Positions 1 to 55,960 of a DNA stretch of 64,000 bases are shown here, one piece after another. Each line of letters begins with the position of its first letter. Position 1 is the stretch's first letter. The position numbers and the translations under genes were made by a program. The notes beneath the pieces were generated by a model. It was not told the DNA's origin. It did not search any database and saw only the letters and a list, made by a program, of their open reading frames with translations. Origin of the DNA: Bugula neritina (taxonomy: Eukaryota; Animalia; Bryozoa); the NCBI GenBank assembly GCA_964035545.1, contig OZ037768.1:11130741-11194740 (forward strand). Direction: 5' to 3'.

Positions 1-1
1 T

Positions 2-967
2 ATCCTTGCTTTAGCAGCTGTTGATTTGTCTGTATGCAGCATATCAATGCCAATTTGGCTGTTCACAACTTTCACTGAAGATCACGGCTCAGAGCTGCTG
101 TGCAAAGCTGACAAATTTATAAACTTTTTCTCAATTCCGATGTCAGCCGGCATTCTTCTAACCATAGCAATTGACAGATTCTTATTAGTATTCTTTGTGA
201 AAGTGAAAATCATAACAAGATATAAGGCTAAGTTGATAATATTCTTTCTAGCGCTAGGGTGCATTGCTATTGCTATTCCACAGACTCTCTCCTTTACCAC
301 GTTGTACAAACTTGATGAAGAGCTGGTAGCAGCCATATGCCAGGGCACTATAACATGCAACACACTGAAATGTCAGCACACCAGCGAGTACGTGTCCCGG
401 GATGTCTGGTTTTACATGTGGAGAAGTCTGATTATAGCCTTCCTCGTCATGTCGGTTATCTTCACGAGTGTTTACACGTCAATATTTGCCAAAGTCTATA
501 GAATTCACCGTAAAATGAGTCGCTACACAAACTCCGTCCACGAAAAGAGACGGGAGATACCGATGCAGACGGATCATGTGACATTCTCGAGCTCAGAACC
601 TTCCTCCGATAGCAAATCGATATCCAACCGAAACTCCGTCTTAGGAACCAACAACAATCGTCCTAAGAAACAAAACCTGCCTCATTTGCAGACTGCTCGC
701 ATACTGTTCTTGGTGACATTCTGCTTCATTGTAGCCTATGCTCCACTTGTTTTGATGATGTTTCTGGGAAGTTGTGAGAGCAAAGAAGAAGAAGATCTTG
801 AAACTCCGTGTCGCAGAAATGACTACCGAAGATTTCTGTGGCATTTTTATTTTCTGCACCACATAGTAAATCCAATAATTTATTCATTTATGAACCCAAG
901 ATTCAGAGATGCTCTGCGTAAGTGCATGAGTTCCAATGTCTGCTGTAAAGATGGCGGAGGCAGTTGA
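2..967 (+). CDS. Class A (rhodopsin-like) GPCR, peptide-receptor-like, paralog 1; 5'-truncated by the window edge
   Basis: Frame is open from position 2 (ILALAAVDLSVCSISMP = TM2). Shows the TM3 Cys, IAIDRF, TM6 FIVAYAP, TM7 NPIIYSFMNPRFR and helix 8. First stop is TGA 965-967; a probable readthrough extension runs to TGA 1046-1048 (see findings). Confidence 0.93.
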   Translation: MLALAAVDLSVCSISMPIWLFTTFTEDHGSELLCKADKFINFFSIPMSAGILLTIAIDRFLLVFFVKVKIITRYKAKLIIFFLALGCIAIAIPQTLSFTTLYKLDEELVAAICQGTITCNTLKCQHTSEYVSRDVWFYMWRSLIIAFLVMSVIFTSVYTSIFAKVYRIHRKMSRYTNSVHEKRREIPMQTDHVTFSSSEPSSDSKSISNRNSVLGTNNNRPKKQNLPHLQTARILFLVTFCFIVAYAPLVLMMFLGSCESKEEEDLETPCRRNDYRRFLWHFYFLHHIVNPIIYSFMNPRFRDALRKCMSSNVCCKDGGGS

Positions 968-1122
968 CAGATGGCGGGTACTGGAGAGAACCACAGTGGC
1001 AGCAAGACAACATCAACATCCATGCAGATTACCAACACCCCGGTGTGAAGTATTTCATTATAAACTATATACATGCCAATACGTCATGCCCATGTACTTA
1101 TTGTGTTCTTTCCAGTACCTGC
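965..1122 (+). promoter_or_regulatory. Putative stop-codon readthrough signal of GPCR paralog 1 (UGA-CAG plus 3' stem 974-991/1105-1122)
   Basis: GCGGGTACTGGAGAGAAC (974-991) pairs contiguously with GTTCTTTCCAGTACCTGC (1105-1122): 16 Watson-Crick and 2 G-U pairs. The in-frame extension is QMAGTGENHSGSKTTSTSMQITNTPV*. Confidence 0.75.
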
Positions 1123-2059
1123 ATATGTTTCTTTATCTTTTCTTTTTATTTAACAACTTAACACATTAAACAAAATTGACGAGAATGTTGCAATACACAT
1201 CGAAGTAATTATGCATTTCTATTAGAATAAACCAGAGTTAGGCTTATATTAAGTTACATTAGTACAAGTGCTTGGTGCTATAATCCTATTGTAATCACGT
1301 TTAGGTTATATTAGCTTATTTGAAGTAGAATATGTAATATGTAATGTTATATATTATCCATTATATATATTATATATATAGCAATAAGAACTGTTTAGTG
1401 TTCAGTTTTTATTTCACACATCAATATTTCAATATAATTGTCATAAACTTATTTATTATTATGAGCAGAAACTGTAGTGGGAAAATAAAACTTTATTTAA
1501 CAACTCGGAATCTAATTTTGATTTTCTAACATCTTTTGTTGTAAAAACATGCTAATACATATATTTGCAGAATTTTGCTATTAGTCATTCTAACTCATAT
1601 ATATAATATAATTGACTTAATAAGTTTTATAACGGCTAAATTAAAACCTCTTCTGTAAGAGTTTAGATCAGTGCTAAAAAATTTGGTAGAAAGTTTCTAC
1701 TTTATGCTAAAAGTCTGTTTCTGCCTGAAGTAGGGCTTGGTGTCTCTCACCCTACATGTCTAAATCAGATATGTGATGACATGTTTACAGGCTAGTTTAA
1801 AGGAGTTGGTGATAATAATAATGTTATACACTCTTACAGTAAACATGAATAAACTAAAAAATGCATTTTCAACCTTTTTAACTGAAAATCTGTTCAAAAT
1901 TTATACAAACTTGGCAAAATGCAGCTAGCAGAAACAACATAATAACATTATAAATGTGGTTAGCATGCATATAAATCATGATAAATATTACGGTTTGTTT
2001 AAATGATATTAATAATATTATTATTTATTAATAGATTAACATGCATTAATAATTTTACT

Positions 2060-2206
2060 AAAAAGTAATGTTATATATATATGGACAAAACCGTTCAACT
2101 TTTACATATGCAATCCTATACTTGATAAATAATTGCCCCCACCGGGATTCAAACCGCAGACCTCCGGCTTGCAAGCAGGAGCGCTAACCAATCACACCAC
2201 AGGGGC
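2060..2206 (-). mobile_element. tRNA-derived SINE or tRNA pseudogene (Ala-like head)
   Basis: Minus strand 2206-2134 reads GCCCCTGTGGTGTGATTGGTTAGCGCTCCTGCTTGCAAGCCGGAGGTCTGCGGTTTGAATCCCGGTGGGGGCA. It has an A-box and a B-box variant (GGTTTGAATCC) but imperfect stems and a 6-nt anticodon loop. The 3' boundary is approximate. Confidence 0.6.
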
Positions 2207-4963
2207 CACTGGGTAAACTAAACAAGCTGCACTAGTTAATTCATAGTTAGACAGGAGCTGGTGATTGCATGCGTTGTATTTGAAATACATTGATGGCATG
2301 GATATAATCACTAGTTAATAAAACACAAATTAAAAGATGCATTACCTGAATATTTCTGATGAGTTATTCACATAGCTGGGGAGACAATTCTAAAACTTGC
2401 CAACATTTTCAGAGTTTAAACAAAACTAATATCTCAAGTTTTGTATTTTATGAAATTAATATTTAAATATCTGCAATAGCCAAAGTAGATGTCAGATAAA
2501 GTAGTTTATTTTGTGTGTAAATAAGGTAGGCTTACTAACTTTTCGGAGATATGAACAAAAAAGATACCATTGACTACTAGGAGTTGCTTCCTTCTGAATG
2601 TTACGCCCTTCATTTATATCAACATTAGGGGAACTTTAAGTGAATGAAACCCAATTTCTAACACATGCGGCAAATTCAAAGAGTAGATATATTACCTCTG
2701 TAAGCAACCAGCAGCTGAAAAAAAGTGCAGTCAGACTGCATAACTTTGAGAAGTTGTAGTTGTTTTCTCATTTATCCTAATGAATCCTAGTGAATGATAA
2801 GTAAGTTAACTTATATGGTTTGTACGTGAGAATTAAAGCCCCAAAACACTTGTTTTTATATAAAAAAAGACTCAAAACTTTAAATCCTATTTACCTTTTA
2901 AAGCGAAAAAAGAATGTGAATAGATATCTTAAATGCAAAAACACAAAAATAATTTCTAACTTTGGTAACTAATAAATATGCACACATGTGCAAACCAAAA
3001 CTATTTTTTAGTTCGCCCTCATAAAAACTTATATAGACAACAATGGGGTGAGGCTTTATGCCACCAACACGCAAGTTTTTAAAAATATAAGTCAAACAGC
3101 AAATTAAATGATTATCATTGTTTACAATGACTAGTTGTAATTTAAAACATTCACCAAAAGTATAATTTAATTAAATCGCTTGAAAAGCCTTATGCTATGA
3201 TACTATAAGCTGTATAGAAAACTATGAGAAACAACCTTTCACTAGTACTATTCAAGATACCTGTTTGCTAGATTCTACATGAGTAGAGAATAAGCACATA
3301 AACAAATGAATACCTATAATACTAGGTATGCACTAAAATAGATAATACCCTAAGAATATAAACAATGCTCAGTTATTTATAGACATATTAAGATAATCTT
3401 TAGTAATTTGTGGTTATAACATCTGACTTGACTCTTTTGTGAAGCTGGGTACGGTAGGAGATGGAATGGCAGTTTCCTTTGACAGAGAAACTTGTATAAC
3501 AGAAGAAACCTGTATAACAGAATCTTCATTTTATGCAATATATTTTACAGCTTACATAAAAACTGGTTTCTTCAAAAAGCAATAGCAATGCTATTTTGAA
3601 CAAAGTTTTTCATTGGTGAAGAGTATGCTAAGATTTGTATTGGCATGTAAAAGAAGTTAATAGATTCTCATATTAATTAGCACCTTAAAGGGATCATATT
3701 ATAACAAGCCAATCTGCTATTATCACTATGATGTGTCATAGTTTTCAAGTCAGAAAGCTGGTGAGTTATGGAGAGGCAACTTCTAATTATAGTTCAATTA
3801 TACAAAATGTTACTGCTAATATCACTGTAAGCAGCATCTTATGTTGCTGATTCATATGGAGATAAAATCTATAACAGTCCTTTATCATGTGTGCTGCCTT
3901 TTCTTTCTTCTTCCTTTTGTTAAAACCTATAAATATATAATTACTATAAACCTCAAACATTCTTGCAAACTCTAGTAGTAGTTTGTTGTAGTTGAAGATC
4001 AACTCTTTAGATAAACTGGCTGAACAATCGGAGCAATCAGAATAAAGTAAATGGTGCAATAAGAAATCTCAGTACAACTATTCATATGTGTATAATAAAC
4101 TTGGGTACAATCTGGGTACAAATATTATAGGGCTACCATAGACTGTCTATGATTTTTAAGAAAAATCTTCTTAAGGCTACGAATTATTCATAGATAAAAT
4201 GTGTTGCTTAATTTAGCTAACTTGTTTATTTATATATGACATTTTTCTGTCATGTCATGACAGGATAAAAATTATTTCCAGTATATATCACTTGCATATT
4301 TTTCTCACATAAATTTGTCTAGGGTCAATTACCTATTAAGTAGCAACCCTTTTAAAGTACAGCTGGGTTCTGAAACTTGGACTGCCTCCAAGTTAAGATT
4401 GCTATCTTTCATAGAGATAAAAGCTAGCCTAACTTTTGTTGTAGACGCGAAGATTAAATCTTGCCATTTAGATTTTCAGCTATGCATATTTTATCTGATA
4501 TGCTGTATATCAAACAAGACTGACAATTCAAAAGAAAACTAGGATATATTTATAGCAAATGAGCGCCTTTAAACAGATCTCATGTGCACAACTGCATGTA
4601 TTCTTTTAACAATCTGAACAAAAAATAAGTGATAAATTACTCTAAGCATGTGAGACCAAAAAGCACTAAACAAAAAATATAACATCATAAATAAAACTGG
4701 CTACTTGCTTCAAAAACAGAGAGTTTTTTGTAAATTTTGTCACCCCAAAAGATTCCACTTGAACATTATAAGCAGCCTAGTCTATGTCATTATGCAAATT
4801 TTATTACCGTTTAAATGTTGCATAATGTAAATGCTTTGATATGGATAATATAATTGTATTATTTGCTTTCACAATAAACTCAGTAAAGGGTATTATTTTC
4901 AACAAGTATTTCCATAACTGTTACTAGCTATTATATTAGTTTTAGGTTTTGTGCCAGTTTTGA

Positions 4964-10760: not shown

Positions 10761-12068
10761 ATGGAATCAAACTTGACCAACACCGTAAACTATACCTCCT
10801 CGTACAGTGCGCCGATGCTACCTGTTTGCACAGAAAATATTCAGAAAATTATTTGCGACTTCATCTATACTGGTGTACAGAAACCCGTAGACATAAAAGA
10901 TTACAAACAGTCAGTGTGGATATGGGCATCTTTTGGATTCTTTACGCCGTTATGTTTATTTGGAATTATTGGCAACATAATAACAATTATTATGTTTTCC
11001 AAATACATAAAGAAGACAACTACTTCGGTTTTTATTGTTGCTCTAGCCTTTGTTGACTTGCTAGTGTGCAGCATCTCTATGCCAATCCAGTTGTTTGTTA
11101 CTCTCAATGGGTTCCACCAGTTTGACCCTATTTGTCGAATAGAGAAATTTGTCACCTTTCTAGCATGTCCGCTTTCAGCAGGAATCTTGGCTGTAATAGC
11201 AATAGATCGATTTCTACTCATATTTGTTGCTCGTACTGACATAGTGACTAAATTCAGAGCAAAGATTATAATTGCTGTAGTAACATGCATATGCTTGGGA
11301 CTAGCAATTTTTTACACGCTCGCTCATACCACTTTGAGACACATATCTAAAAAAGACCTTGAAAAAGTTTGTGATGGAGAATTTTTTTGCAACATAAAAA
11401 GATGTGATGCCACTAGCTTTCTCTTCGAAAAGCCCCATGAAGTGGCGTTTGACTTGCTGGAAGTTACGCAATACACATTCATTGCAATAGTTGTCATCTT
11501 TATTGTGCTCTACACGTTGATTTTTGTGAGAGTTTATCGAATTCACAAGAAAATGACTTTGTGGAAGTCTACCAGGCATGTTACAAAATCAAGTCAGAAA
11601 GTCTATGAAGATTCGAACACATTCACAACGGAATATCCAGCCACAAATGGAAATGCTACAGAAAATGGTAAAATCGGAGCAAACACTCTAGAAGGAACAA
11701 GCCAGGACAACCACGAAAGAGAAGTTGGTGCAGCTGAAGAGGCTAAACTGATGAACACACCCAAAGAGCCACCAAAGATTAAGAAAGAAAAGATCAAAAA
11801 GAGACGACCACCTCATCTGCAAACAGCCCTCACTCTCTTTCTGGTAACTCTCACGTTCATCATTGCCTATGCTCCAATGATTCTGATCACAATGCTAAGA
11901 GTTTGTGAGGATAACACGATGTGCCCGGATAATGGCTACAAAAAGTTCTTCTACTACTTTTACTTTCTCAACCACGTAACAAACCCTATAATTTACTCAT
12001 TCATGAATCCCAGGTTTAAGGACGCTGTCAAGGTATTCTTCAACAAGTTCTCGTGCGCCAGTAGCTGA
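10761..12068 (+). CDS. Class A (rhodopsin-like) GPCR, peptide-receptor-like, paralog 2 (435 aa)
   Basis: N-terminal NLT/NYT sequons, TM1 GIIGN, TM2 LAFVDLLV, IAIDRF, long ICL3, TM6 FIIAYAP and NPIIYSFMNPRFK; clearly paralogous to 2-967. First stop is TGA 12066-12068; a probable readthrough extension runs to TAA 12141-12143. Confidence 0.95.
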   Translation: MESNLTNTVNYTSSYSAPMLPVCTENIQKIICDFIYTGVQKPVDIKDYKQSVWIWASFGFFTPLCLFGIIGNIITIIMFSKYIKKTTTSVFIVALAFVDLLVCSISMPIQLFVTLNGFHQFDPICRIEKFVTFLACPLSAGILAVIAIDRFLLIFVARTDIVTKFRAKIIIAVVTCICLGLAIFYTLAHTTLRHISKKDLEKVCDGEFFCNIKRCDATSFLFEKPHEVAFDLLEVTQYTFIAIVVIFIVLYTLIFVRVYRIHKKMTLWKSTRHVTKSSQKVYEDSNTFTTEYPATNGNATENGKIGANTLEGTSQDNHEREVGAAEEAKLMNTPKEPPKIKKEKIKKRRPPHLQTALTLFLVTLTFIIAYAPMILITMLRVCEDNTMCPDNGYKKFFYYFYFLNHVTNPIIYSFMNPRFKDAVKVFFNKFSCASS

Positions 12069-12204
12069 CGTGAGGCAGGGACAGCATCTGGAGGTTATAC
12101 TACTACAATTACATCAGTGCAAATAGTGAGCACTCAGCTGTAAATATGCTATCATTACCCAGTAAATTGATACCAGTAGTTGCCTAGATGTTGTACCCTG
12201 TCTT
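12066..12204 (+). promoter_or_regulatory. Putative stop-codon readthrough signal of GPCR paralog 2 (UGA-CGU plus 3' stem 12072-12091/12184-12204)
   Basis: GAGGCAGGGACAGCATCTGG pairs with CTAGATGTTGTACCCTGTCTT: 20 bp including 4 G-U pairs, with one bulged A at 12195. The in-frame extension is REAGTASGGYTTTITSVQIVSTQL*. Confidence 0.75.
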
Positions 12205-16100: not shown

Positions 16101-19100
16101 CAAAACTTGGCAAGTCCTGAAGCTAAGGTTGAGTGGAACTTTCCATTTAGTACATGTTTAACATAATAAATGAAATCAGCATGTTGTGTTTAGTTCACAT
16201 TTGGTTAAAAATAGGCAGTTCAATTCCATATCTTTTTCCCATGGATTTTTCAAGTGTTGCAAAACAAAAACACGCTGCTGAACATTGCACGAAAAGCAAA
16301 AGATTTCGTACATATCAGTTAGGGCCTGGGAGCTGAGTTTAGCAGTTATAAATTTTTGCATAATAAGCTTATGCAAATTTAAATTTTCAACTCTAAACTA
16401 ATGTGAAAATATCAAGTATGAAATTATTTCTAAATTTCGTTTGAAAACTCTAATCTGACAGTCTTGCTGCAAAATTTAAATTTGACTAATATTACGTGTA
16501 TGTTAACAACTCAGTGTTGAAGGTTGTATATCTAACATCTCTATAAAGTTTCCATAGTCCAACTAACAGGTTTTTGTGTCTTACCATATAGTCAAGTGAC
16601 AGTTGGAACAGGTACTTGTGTCCTAATACCATGTAGTCAAGTGACAGTTGGAACAGGTACTTGTGTCCTTCTACCATGTAGTCAAGTGACAGTTGGAACA
16701 GGTACTTGTGTCCTAATACCATGTAGTCAAGTGACAGTTGGAACAGGTACTTGTGTCCTAATACCATGTAGTCAAGTGACAGTTGAAACAGGTACTTGTG
16801 TCCTAATACCATGTAGTCAAGTGACAGTTGTAGCAAGTACTTGTGTCCTTTTACCATGTAGTCAAAAGTCAGTAAAACATTGTAGTTTAATTATGATGCA
16901 TTATAATATATATATTGTATATATATATATTGTACCGCACGTTCTAGTTTATAATGTAAGGAACAGCCTAATCAAATATCAACAACACAATATGCCCAAA
17001 CAGGTGATCCGGGAATTAATAATTTGGATCTATTTCAAGAAACATTTGGAATGCATAAATTTACTTTTGACTCAGCTATAGTTTGAATGTTTTACATTGA
17101 AACAGCCAAAAACCAAATATATTTGCATATTATGCAAAACATTTGACACCAGGTAGCATGTACTCAGTGTTGACATAGAGAAGATATCATGTTATTTATT
17201 CTTATTGACAGGTCATGACAAATATATGAGAATCGCCTTGGAGATGCTGGTGGCAAATCTGGAGTGATTTATGGCAGAGCTGATTCGTAGAATGACATGC
17301 ACACACCACATGCAGCTGACTTACTGATAGAGCACACAAGTCGTATTTAGTTTGACTGTAATCTAAGCTGTCGCAGGAAGTGGTAGACTGAGTTTTGGGT
17401 CTCTTTGGTTTATCATTGGAATGTGGAGAGTACGCTTGCTCGTCCTGAAATATTCCAGTCCTGGGATTACAAGCGTACAAACCAAACACATGATAACTAA
17501 ACACTAAAACTTTCTAGTTTCACATGTTCCGATTTACTCAAGCAAGCAGAAGATATTGCAAAATAACTCAGTCAAAAACCAGAATTTAAAAATGAAGTTA
17601 ATTCAATCTTAGCGAGTACATGAAAAGTGTTTAAACAGCTCTTACTAGAGGAGAGATATCAGGGGCACACTCAGCCCCCTCCTCACTAGAGATATGACTG
17701 TGATCTGAAGCTAAGGATCTCGGTACCAAGTACGACTCGGGGTCAAAGTCCTTGAGAGGAAAGTCGACGCACTTCTGTGACTTGATCCAGCGATTGCTGA
17801 GGAACTGGAACCTCTTCAGGTGTATTATCTGCATACAGATGCAACACATCACACTTAGTTTCTAATTTACAATAAAATATAATATATTTGAGAAAGATAA
17901 CGTCATAAATCATGCATCTAGTGAGTTGTTGTTGAGAAAGAAACATGCCCGAAATCCAGAGAAAAATTAAAAAGTAACGTATAATAAAATATTACCAGTC
18001 CCCATCATCCAAATTAAAATATTAATTAAATTGGGAATAGTTTATTGGAAAAGAATTTTATAGAATGGTGCATAAATTAATTTCATTATATCTATATTAG
18101 GAGCTGCTGCGACTAACATGCTCTCTAAACAAACACATTGATGGAGGATAACAATAGCAACAGTGATTCAGTAGCCATGTAGTCTTCATAAGAAAAACAT
18201 GAGTTGCAGCCAAAATAACTGAAATTTAGTTATCACACATAAAAGCTATTTTCTAGCACTTTCCATCATCTTGAAATGTTGTATCTGGCATGTGGAATGA
18301 TGCTTGTACAACTCATCACACACGGAGAATGATGCTGGTAGGACTGACTCAGTCACATCATACAACACGTGACCTACCAAAACTGGAGGCAGGCGCCAGA
18401 TCTCTAGCTTCTTAGAGGCTCTCCTGTGCTCCTTACACTTGGAGCAGTAGTAGAGCTCATCTTCCGACAGCTCTTCCTCTTTGGTAAACGACTCTAGACA
18501 TTTCTGTATGTTGACCGGCTCATCAGAATTGTACACGTCAGACACACTGCAGTGAATCTGCAATATACTTTTCTAATATAACTGAGCATTCATGCTGAAG
18601 ATGTGTGAGAGGGGATGAATCCCAACAGCAAGTTACAGTGGAATTGTGGGAGATATTATAATAGGTGTGGCCTTAATATAGAACATCCTGAACGCCTTCA
18701 TAGTGATGTCAGCATTTACTGAAGACTGTCCTAAATGTTATTAGGAGTACTCGCAACTCGCCCAACTCTGATTTAGTGCACAAATCATGATTCATTTTAA
18801 TTCAACAGTGATTTTAAATAGATGCTCCAAACCCAATGTACTGATAAATTCTACGACAACTTGGCTTTAACTTACAAAAAATCCTAACGAACTCAACCTT
18901 TTCAGTTCACATGGTTTTCTGGCAAAGTTATTAATCAATGTTGCTAAGAGCAAGAATAATATGAAGCATAAGCAGCCTTCTGACAGATATAGAAATATTT
19001 TTAGAAAAAACAGATAAAAATAACTTCTCAACAATTATAATCTCAACAACGCTTAATGAGGCTTGACAACAGATATACATAGCAGAGCATACACAGGTCT

Positions 19101-29067: not shown

Positions 29068-29164
<97 letters not shown>

Positions 29165-53769: not shown

Positions 53770-55960
53770 TTACAAATTCCCACAGGCTATAAGATGTTGA
53801 GCAGCTGCTTCATCTAAATTAACAATGATACCCTCACCTGACACTGTAGATTTAAACAAAGGGTTTTCGTCATCTATGTGCTCTGGTAGATGAGAATGTT
53901 TCTTCCACATTTGAGTACAGAGTACAGAGCCTACTAATAGCACCAATATGAATGTCAGAGCAGTGCTTGCCTGTCTCACATCTCTAGCCAACTTTCTTCA
54001 AATAGATATTTGCACCAATGTGTTTATACGAACAACTAATTTATTACAATCATTAATGAATAATTACCAATTTAATGAAGAATCCAACAAGTCATAACAT
54101 GCTTCTTGAAAAAGATGTACATAGAATAAAACTTCCCCAGGTTAGAGGTAAAACAACATTAAACAAGGTACATGGTGAGAATTTGTGTTTAAAAATAATT
54201 GGCGATCACCGACTGTGTCTCCATCGTAAATTGGAATGAATGCTGGTCATTTTACTTAATTTAGCACACACTATATATCGCTAGTTTTTGGCTATTTTCC
54301 ACAGTTTAGCTGCTAATGTATATAATTTTTTTTGCAATAAACTGATAAAATATTAACAAATACAGCTGAATAAGCAAGGCTTCTTCTAACTTTGCTTGAT
54401 TTCGTAATTTTATCCTAATCCTTTTAGTAAATTTGGATGTGTGGCGTGATGAAAAAAGCATCACACCTGCACACCTAAATTTACTAGAAAAATTAGTATA
54501 AAACATAGAAAATCAAGCAAAGTTGGAAGAAACCTTGCTTATTCAGCTGTATTTGTTAATATTTTATCAGTTTAATGTAAAAAACTTTATATATTAACAG
54601 CTAAACTGTGAAAAATAGCCAAAAACTAGAGATATATAGTGTGTACTAAATTACGTAAAATGATGTGCTATGAACTTATGGCCGTGGTTTCATTTGATGC
54701 CACTGTTTCCAAGCATCAAATGAAAAATATATTCACGAAGCTTGCAGTATATAAAGAATATATTATTTGAAATATAGAGTGTGGATAAATAGCCATAATG
54801 AAATGATAAAACTATAATCTCATCAATATACTTACATCTCTTTCTCAAGTTTGAGCAACTGTTTCTGTTTCAGGTCTTCTTCTGTCAGAGTTTTATTTGG
54901 ACATACACAACACTGATTTATAGTCTGTGATACAGAGTAATTTACAGCAACCGAGTTATTAGCAGTTCCGTTTCTCACTTCTAATGAATTGGCTACATTA
55001 ACTTGTACACTACAGAGCTGCAAAACATCAAGTAAATGCACACTATGTTATAAGCATCTAGCACACGAAATCATAATCCGTTCTCCAAAACTACAAATTT
55101 CTGTCAACACCTGAGCCCATATGCTTTACTAAAACAAAGATATAAACACAGTTGCCATGTGTTTCGTTGCCAGTATTGGGATAAGTTATAGTTTTTGCTG
55201 GCCAACTCAGTTACTTTAGAGAAAAAGTAAAAATGGTGAAATATCTTGCGATTGCGTTTATACTCACATATAGAAATTAGTGTGTGTGGCTAACTTCAAG
55301 GAAATCTCCGTATAGAAATACAACCATAATTTTAATCCAGTAACAGGGTTGGAGTAATTGCAATTTGTAATTGATTGTAATTAATTACATTTTTTAATTA
55401 ATACAACTTTTTCAAGTAATTGAATGTAATTTGTAACTGATGTATAAACATGTAATTGATCTTTACAATTACGTTATAATTACATATCAACTACTTCAAA
55501 ATTTTAAATGTTAAAATATTTTTATACTTTCTTTACCATGCTTACTGTTTAACAAAAAAATTCGTATTCATTCAATATAGTATTGTATCACCCTATCAAT
55601 CACTGTTGAGAACAAATTGAGCAAGTTATGAAAATATATTGCTATTCTCTCTGGTTTGGTGTCAAATTGTAATTGCAATTAACTACATTAATTGCTAACT
55701 ATAATTATAATTATAATTATAATTGGCAAATTTTCATGCAATTTTGTAATTAATTACATTCCTATGCGACAAATGCTCTTTAAAATCCAAAATTAATGCA
55801 AAGATGATAAGTAGTAGAATCAATAAAAACTAAAACACATTATTAACTGACTTTTGTAAGTGTTTATACTCACCAATATAAAGAATACTATGGGAAGTGG
55901 AACGCTGATTACAGTATGCCAACAGTGTCTTTCGAAAAGTCCAATGCAAAATATTTTCAT
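53770..55960 (-). CDS. Uncharacterised small type I membrane glycoprotein, 164 aa, 3 exons
   Basis: Exons 55960-55874, 55017-54836 and 53995-53770 have GT-AG introns and join in frame (495 nt). The product has a hydrophobic signal-like segment, 4 N-glycosylation sequons, CCVCP, a charged helix, TM ALTFILVLLVGSVLC and a cytosolic tail containing ENPLFKS. Confidence 0.72.
54247..54663. mobile_element. Foldback-type MITE / long inverted repeat
   Basis: Arms ~54247-54402 and ~54509-54663 are near-complete reverse complements around a ~105-bp spacer; no clear TSD seen. Confidence 0.85.
55345..55760. repeat. GTAATT/AATTAC-rich repeat starting CAGGGTTGG; probable non-autonomous DNA transposon remnant
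   Basis: Dense subterminal-type GTAATT(G) motifs in both orientations; only one end is recognisable. Confidence 0.45.

Follow-up and report, generated by a model that had tools for sequence, protein, structure and literature searches.

Probable programmed readthrough of a UGA stop, with a stimulatory long-range stem, in an orphan class A GPCR of a Bugula-type bryozoan

The analyzed window is a stretch of 64,000 nucleotides (G000:C4:11130741-11194740) taken from a genome of 216 Mb. It carries two tandem GPCR genes, named here paralog 1 and paralog 2. Paralog 1 is an intronless ORF of 433 codons whose start lies upstream of the window (the full ORF corresponds to L003:1444-2745). It matches the Pfam profile 7tm_1 (PF00001) over its whole length (positions 1-260, E 8.7e-27) and, according to this full-length match, is a rhodopsin-class (class A) GPCR. 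Its closest protein is P0001 (98% identity), encoded at locus L011 of the assembly GCA_010799875.2. The ORF ends with GGC AGU UGA C, i.e. a UGA-CAG context, and the same UGA is present in the B. neritina assembly (L011). Paralog 2 is located on the same strand, 9.8 kb downstream (10761-12068); it also covers the whole PF00001 profile (E 1.3e-29) and its closest protein is KAF6040109.1 from Bugula neritina. According to these closest proteins, the source of the window is a Bugula closely related to B. neritina. The features of the two genes and of their 3′ regions are the following:

1-964, + strand: coding sequence of paralog 1, 3′ two thirds (ORF listings and Pfam 7tm_1 match)
965-967, + strand: first stop codon, UGA, candidate readthrough codon, with Ser AGU before it and C968 after it
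968-1045, + strand: in-frame extension of 26 codons, Ser/Thr-rich, with a T-P-V end, which aligns with the extensions of other lineages
974-991, + strand: 5′ arm of the 18-bp stem, GCGGGUACUGGAGAGAAC, extension codons 3-8
993-999, + strand: inner continuation of the stem, 5′ arm, past the bulged C992
1046-1048, + strand: second in-frame stop codon, UGA followed by A, within the loop of the stem
1098-1104, + strand: inner continuation of the stem, 3′ arm
1105-1122, + strand: 3′ arm of the 18-bp stem, GUUCUUUCCAGUACCUGC, in the 3′ UTR
1165-1170, + strand: hexamer ATTAAA resembling a poly(A) signal, the first past the stop and downstream of the 3′ arm (consensus match only)
1226-1231, + strand: hexamer AATAAA, second candidate poly(A) signal (consensus match only)
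10761-12065, + strand: paralog 2, the tandem GPCR copy, coding sequence of 435 codons (45% identity with paralog 1)
12066-12068, + strand: UGA of paralog 2, with Ser AGC before it and C after it, also found in four independent Logan contigs (L007-L010)
12069-12140, + strand: extension of paralog 2, 24 codons, with a T-Q-L end; the next stop is UAA at 12141-12143
12072-12089, + strand: 5′ arm of the paralog 2 stem, two 9-bp helices
12186-12204, + strand: 3′ arm of the paralog 2 stem, with one bulged A

At paralog 1, the segment 974-991 pairs with 1105-1122 over 18 uninterrupted bp, 16 of which are Watson-Crick pairs and two of which are G-U pairs (G976-U1120 and G986-U1110). Past the bulged C992, 7 further bp (993-999 with 1098-1104) bring the stem to 25 bp in all. 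The spacer between the UGA and the stem (968-973) is 6 nt long, the stem thus starting at nt 7, and the loop comprises 113 nt. The original prediction had described this 18-bp pairing 6 nt past the UGA, its inward extension through ACAGT/ATTGT after a 1-nt bulge and the location of the second stop within the 113-nt loop. All these points were re-derived as described, the inward extension being included in the 7-bp continuation. The region proposed for folding, 960-1135, has a predicted energy of -52.6 kcal/mol with RNAfold compared to -37.6 ± 3.6 kcal/mol for 200 dinucleotide shuffles (z -4.1, none of the 200 being as good). The two G-U pairs had been considered to favor a structure at the mRNA level over a DNA palindrome; in agreement with this, the arms reach -45.3 kcal/mol as sense strand and -35.4 kcal/mol as antisense, i.e. 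the antisense structure is predicted to be weaker by ~10 kcal/mol. Furthermore, the first 45 nt past the UGA show a pairing with the downstream UTR that none of the 45-nt windows taken from the last 600 nt of coding sequence comes close to (z -6.1).

Such a stem is uncommon in the window. A scan of the + strand for uninterrupted stems of at least 18 bp, with no more than two G-U pairs and arms 20-300 nt apart, retrieved only three loci with a comparable stem: the GPCR stem, an (AT)n tract and a foldback. The possibility that the GPCR stem belongs to a dispersed foldback or MITE-type repeat was considered and ruled out, since the region 850-1250 around the stem has one match in the 216-Mb genome, i.e. 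is single-copy, compared to 82 matches for the foldback used as a control. The 3′ arm is presumably part of the mature mRNA: in each of the six lineages carrying a stem (see below), the sequence that separates the stop from the 3′ arm is free of AAUAAA and AUUAAA. The Logan contigs carry no poly(A) tails and are therefore uninformative about mRNA ends.

Word-based protein searches, in which the ORF and the extension were used as separate queries, retrieved about 20 members of the receptor family from bryozoan-associated metagenomes, Logan assemblies and the genome of Watersipora subatra. In a maximum-likelihood tree, 20 members form a single clade (99/99 support) that includes several well-supported subclades. 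The names automatically attributed by NCBI vary from one member to another (adrenergic-like, npr-1-like or nociceptin-like) and the family is treated here as orphan class A receptors. DNA sequences are available for eight lineages: paralog 1 (with L011), paralog 2 (with L007-L010), L005, L006/L012/L013, L015, L016-L018, L019 and L020. These lineages come from Bugula and from other bryozoans, and protein identity across them is only ~40-55%. All eight have a UGA stop, and each of these UGA codons was found in two to six independent assemblies and is therefore not a sequencing error. The UGA is directly followed by C in seven lineages (CAG, CGU, CGG and CAA in one lineage each, CUAG in L016, L019 and L020), the sequence of L006 being UGA-UGG. 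A Ser AGC or AGU codon directly precedes the UGA in seven of the eight lineages. In six further homologs for which no DNA is available, the protein terminates at the corresponding position, and Ser is the last residue of four of them (P0004, P0040, P0044 and P0048). This conserved Ser codon (962-964 in paralog 1 and 12063-12065 in paralog 2) may contribute to the recoding signal, through a P-site tRNA or nascent-peptide effect, or may encode a conserved residue.

In all eight lineages, the UGA is followed by an in-frame, Ser/Thr-rich extension of 19-31 codons. In six of them, the extension in frame 0 comprises 23-26 codons, whereas the two other frames remain open over anything between 0 and 66 codons. 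The peptides encoded by the extensions can be aligned with one another and share x-A-G-T near their start, a run of Ser/Thr and, for most of them, a T-x-V/L/F end. More precisely, six of the nine tails compared have a T-x-hydrophobic end, i.e. those of five of the eight UGA lineages and that of the Watersipora protein P0043; this end is absent from L016, L019 and L020. The extensions also align with the uninterrupted coding tail of P0043 (...SATKSTS...STRL) and are therefore homologous to a real coding sequence. Altogether, the conserved stop is followed by a conserved in-frame coding extension in eight lineages, to which the tail of P0043 corresponds.

Three further points concern the UGA. 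First, two metagenome gene calls of 489 aa, P0024 (L012:1501-2970) and P0031 (L013:1501-2970), show W at the position of the stop. A Trp codon was rejected, as the underlying DNA has TGA in both cases; these contigs were evidently called with a code in which TGA is Trp. Second, a general reassignment of UGA is unlikely because UGA also serves as the stop of the extension in paralog 1 and L020, at the homologous end point where the others have UAA or UAG. Third, splicing around the UGA does not need to be invoked since the in-frame peptide similarity reaches both sides of the UGA, so that no intron is necessary.

The long-range stem is not restricted to paralog 1. The same architecture was found in paralog 2, L005, L015, L016 and L019: a 5′ segment located a few nt past the UGA pairs with the 3′ UTR 90-190 nt further, enclosing the second stop and the remainder of the extension. 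With paralog 1, the stem is thus present in six lineages, which belong to four or more subclades of the tree. From -6 to +45 relative to the UGA, the sequences align without any gap and the helix is therefore at a fixed distance from the UGA. The conserved helix, whose consensus is GGGUACAACAGAA with UUCUGUUGUACCC, starts at nt 9 past the UGA (8-nt spacer) and is continuous in the six lineages. Additional outward pairs are lineage-specific, so that the helix of paralog 1 begins at nt 7 and that of paralog 2 at nt 4. Across the family, the stems comprise 13-35 bp and span ~125-220 nt. Since the same cassette recurs in related lineages, the stem is not a chance hairpin.

The pairing was scored by script on an ungapped register anchored at the invariant C-G pair of nt 14 because MAFFT placed the 3′ arm of paralog 1 out of register. 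Over nt 9-23 of the helix, 83 of the 90 cells (15 columns in six lineages) are standard pairs, compared to 68 of 90 on average and 73 at most when the 5′ arms are combined with the 3′ arms of other lineages, and to 39-50 for slid registers. Both-sided (compensatory) changes affect eight of the 15 columns. They stem from paralogs 1 and 2, L015 and L016 and lie mostly in the inner helix. Three adjacent compensatory pairs are unique to paralog 1, which has UGG/CCA versus AAC/GUU elsewhere: its U-A, G-C and G-C pairs correspond in the other lineages to A-U, A-U (G-U in paralog 2 and an A·C mismatch in L016) and C-G, respectively. The duplex energy of each 5′ arm is minimal with its own 3′ UTR in the six lineages, and the sum of these energies is the best of the 720 permutations. 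The pairing of the segment that follows the UGA with the UTR far exceeds that of any window of the coding sequence across the stem lineages (z -4 to -6). The sense strand is more stable than the antisense strand by 10-22 kcal/mol in paralog 1, paralog 2 and L005; in the three other lineages, the two strands are about equal. With four lineages alone, all the changes identified by RNAalifold in the 10-bp core are one-sided, the sequence of this core being conserved among them. An earlier table of pairs was built from the predicted duplex of each sequence itself; it is therefore biased towards pairing and is only descriptive. It should also be emphasized that the 5′ arm encodes residues of the extension, so that constraints on the peptide could explain some of its conservation. 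Overall, these comparisons indicate that the stem is a real and conserved RNA structure, within what appears from its sequence to be a programmed-readthrough cassette.

If there were no recoding, the receptor would end at the UGA, and the downstream ORF and the stem would be relics or would occur by chance. In paralog 1, the two alternative frames past the UGA likewise contain >60 open codons, and the openness of the frame by itself is therefore weak evidence for this gene. Paralog 1 and its B. neritina orthologue differ by 53 of 402 codons (43 synonymous and 10 non-synonymous differences). Their extensions differ by five substitutions (three at third codon positions; three synonymous and two non-synonymous) without any indel; these counts between close orthologues are small. 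By comparison, the 56 nt of UTR located just past the extension show three deletions and six substitutions. Within the 18-bp stem, two substitutions were found, both positions remaining paired through G-U. The 3′ arm is changed at only one of its 18 positions (G-C to G-U, with the pair kept), whereas the flanking UTR is rich in substitutions and indels. The lack of indels in the extension, contrasting with the several indels of the adjoining UTR, the compensatory changes in the stem and the persistence of the UGA, of a homologous extension of similar length and of the stem across lineages that are only 40-55% identical make the lack of recoding highly improbable. Judging from these comparisons, it is thus very likely that translation continues into the extension through recoding of the UGA.

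Recoding could also consist in the insertion of selenocysteine, as some selenoprotein mRNAs have a stem-loop a few nt past their Sec UGA (mentioned in PMC4132726). However, a search with Rfam (E up to 1) did not detect any SECIS in positions 1-4000 of the window, i.e. up to 3 kb past paralog 1, nor in eight loci of the family. Moreover, we know of no precedent for a single Sec in a disordered receptor tail, and a selenocysteine codon appears exceedingly improbable.

No specific stem was found in L006/L012 and L020 (z -0.9 and -1.9, respectively) although both lineages have retained the UGA and the extension, which indicates that the stem is not indispensable. A third exception is the Watersipora gene encoding P0043, which has no UGA: its tail is seven residues shorter at the place where the others have Ser-UGA-x-A-G-T, i.e. 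in the region of the 5′ arm, and no equivalent stem was predicted at this locus. The loss of the UGA therein goes with that of the stem, as far as can be judged from one gene only. At the same locus of Watersipora subatra (L014), the ~75 final coding nt of P0043, which correspond to the tail region, occur a second time almost unchanged in the 3′ UTR, ~100 nt downstream (~2776-2850 and ~2900-2975), forming a small tandem duplication.

The two lineages devoid of a convincing stem raise the question of whether the UGA-C context could drive readthrough alone, as UGA-CUAG does efficiently by itself in mammalian GPCR genes (PMC4132726). In this case, the stem would serve another purpose, such as mRNA stability, localization or the masking of sites in the 3′ UTR, or would slow ribosomes after readthrough. 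This explanation accounts poorly for the position of the helix, which starts at nt 9 from the UGA in six lineages without any indel, and for the lack of stem in the sole gene that lacks the UGA. Furthermore, the geometry of the bryozoan stem equals that of experimentally proven stimulators (PMC3159437). A role of the context alone therefore seems unlikely, and the stem probably stimulates readthrough.

The stem could also guide an ADAR that would edit the A of the UGA to inosine, giving UGG (Trp), the long isoform being then produced from edited mRNA. A duplex of 18-35 bp beside the stop is indeed a plausible ADAR substrate, several differences between lineages at stem positions are A/G differences and, in the minimum free energy fold of paralog 1, A967 belongs to a 4-bp helix (966-969 with 1126-1129) that adjoins the main stem. 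However, 6-8 nt separate the target A from the conserved helix, and the local pairings of this A differ from one lineage to another, so that it is not included in any conserved duplex. Its 5′ neighbor is G, the least favored 5′ neighbor for ADARs. In addition, the C conserved at position +4, like the contexts CUAG and CGG, is a signal for readthrough and has no role in editing. Editing is thus a quite improbable explanation compared to stimulation of readthrough by the stem.

RNA viruses and a few fly genes provide well-documented examples of readthrough stimulated by an RNA structure. To our knowledge, few cellular readthrough structures are supported by covariation. The bryozoan cassette exhibits all the sequence-testable defining features of UGA-C stops associated with an extended 3′ stem-loop: (i) a leaky stop (UGA-C, often followed as CGG or CUA), (ii) a stem of about 12 bp or more that starts ~7-9 nt past the stop and closes over ~100-200 nt, (iii) compensatory substitutions (eight of 15 columns, the scores of cross-lineage and slid registers being all lower), and (iv) a conserved coding extension in frame with a conserved stop. 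The original prediction had likened the stem to an mRNA structure placed as in known readthrough stimulators, a proposal that gains support from the recurrence of the UGA, of the extension and of the stem at a fixed distance, from the compensatory changes and from the match of each arm with its own partner.

The closest known systems are viral. In alphaviruses, extended stem-loops increase UGA readthrough 3- to 14-fold (Firth et al. 2011, PMC3159437). The nsP3/nsP4 junction of VEEV and SINV resembles the bryozoan cassette by its UGA-C (followed as CUA or CGG in many viruses) and by an extended stem-loop that is supported by covariation and formed by two separated segments within ~150 nt of the stop (PMC3159437). 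However, the alphavirus element lies wholly in coding sequence, whereas the 3′ arm of the bryozoan stem lies in the 3′ UTR and its loop holds the remainder of the extension and the stop. Furthermore, the alphavirus element is viral and its stimulation has been measured, whereas the bryozoan one belongs to a cellular gene family and is known from sequence alone. In tobraviruses, pecluviruses and furoviruses, the stop is UGA-CGG (UGA-UGG in one divergent virus), the spacer is 7-8 nt long and the stem comprises at least 12 bp; these signals span 96-138 nt and show many compensatory substitutions, and the design inferred for them is that of the alphavirus stimulators (PMC3159437). The bryozoan family has comparable values (8-nt spacer, 13-35 bp and ~125-220 nt) with more diverse contexts (CGG, CUAG, CAG, CGU, CAA and UGG). 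The likeness concerns the architecture, since these plant RNA viruses are compared here with an animal nuclear gene. The pseudoknot of MuLV also has an 8-nt spacer from the stop and, like the alphavirus stem-loops, occupies the position predicted for the bryozoan helix, at the mRNA entrance of the small subunit (PMC3159437).

Among cellular genes, the mammalian OPRL1 and OPRK1 also encode class A GPCRs with a conserved UGA-CUAG, as in L016, L019 and L020, and a conserved C-terminal extension, giving short and long receptor tails (Loughran et al. 2014, PMC4132726). UGA-C, and especially UGA-CUAG, is the leakiest known context and drives readthrough of these two genes (PMC4132726). Unlike in the bryozoan family, the 12 nt that follow the stop are sufficient in these genes and no conserved structure is involved (PMC4132726). 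An independent origin of mammalian and bryozoan GPCR readthrough is assumed here, the family tree having been built without mammalian receptors. Drosophila hdc, kelch and other insect genes share with the bryozoan family a conserved UGA-C, an extension and an RNA structure within ~100 nt; these structures can vanish in some lineages while readthrough persists, a situation comparable to that of L006 and L020 (PMC5100048; PMC3159437). However, they belong to another phylum and to other genes, and the bryozoan structure is common to the paralogs of a whole family. Lastly, the peroxisomal signals of LDHB and MDH1 are also carried by a short extension with a terminal targeting or binding motif exclusive to the readthrough isoform (PMC4359377). 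The bryozoan motif differs from them: it would be a putative PDZ-type T-x-hydrophobic end accompanied by a Ser/Thr cluster and is not found in all lineages.

Full-text literature searches did not retrieve any report of readthrough in bryozoans or in Bugula, nor of a GPCR readthrough extension ending with a PDZ motif. This work reveals a single cassette (Ser codon, UGA-C, 8-nt spacer, stem and Ser/Thr tail) across a receptor family of a lophotrochozoan phylum. The family offers a natural series of variants, with different stems and +4 contexts, two stemless lineages and one gene without the stop. The receptors of this family are probably annotated ~25 residues too short. Moreover, the parallel with the mammalian opioid-receptor cases suggests that the tails of GPCRs are repeatedly targeted by readthrough.

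The most probable interpretation of these sequence comparisons is that an orphan class A GPCR of a Bugula-type bryozoan undergoes programmed readthrough of its UGA stop, and that the extended 3′ stem stimulates this readthrough. In paralog 1, most ribosomes would stop at the UGA 965-967 and produce the receptor of 433 residues that ends just past helix 8 and a Cys-Cys pair. A fraction of them would decode the weak UGA-C with a near-cognate tRNA. Since the helix begins 6-8 nt past the UGA held in the A site, the base of the stem would be located at the mRNA entrance of the ribosome, and decoding would be favored over termination. Readthrough would add 26 residues, including the Ser/Thr cluster and the T-P-V C-terminus, before termination at the UGA 1046-1048. 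Two forms of receptor would thus coexist, a short one ending past helix 8 and the cysteines and a long one with the Ser/Thr cluster and, in many lineages, a PDZ-like end.

The T-x-hydrophobic end looks like a class I PDZ ligand, and the tail may play a role in control by phosphorylation and arrestin or in anchoring by PDZ proteins. More tentatively, the cassette might be an ancient translational switch common to the whole family, in which the stem would set the share of long tails and could regulate it in response to temperature, helicases or RNA-binding proteins, a possibility that we consider rather doubtful. If it were true, the desensitization and anchoring of the receptor would be tuned at the stop codon and not by splicing.

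Several other features were found in the window. A tRNA-like sequence is located on the - strand at 2134-2206, ~1 kb past the GPCR gene. Its Rfam score (29.4 bits) is just above the gathering score (29), it was not called by ARAGORN and its anticodon loop, examined by eye, reads GCA (Cys). This sequence could correspond to a degenerate tRNA gene or to a repeat of tRNA origin. A 45-nt tandem repeat (6.3 copies, 95% matches) extends from 16582 to 16865. It creates a repetitive ORF of 161 residues (16596-17081), which is probably not a gene. The (AT)n microsatellite found at 29079-29157 is the source of most of the long-stem hits obtained in the scan of the window. Finally, nested inverted repeats with arms of 93 and 85 nt (89-91% complementary) lie at 54247-54663. 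The foldback that they include (stem at 54338-54574, query 54330-54580) belongs to a dispersed MITE-like family, its 82 genome matches being distributed on both strands.
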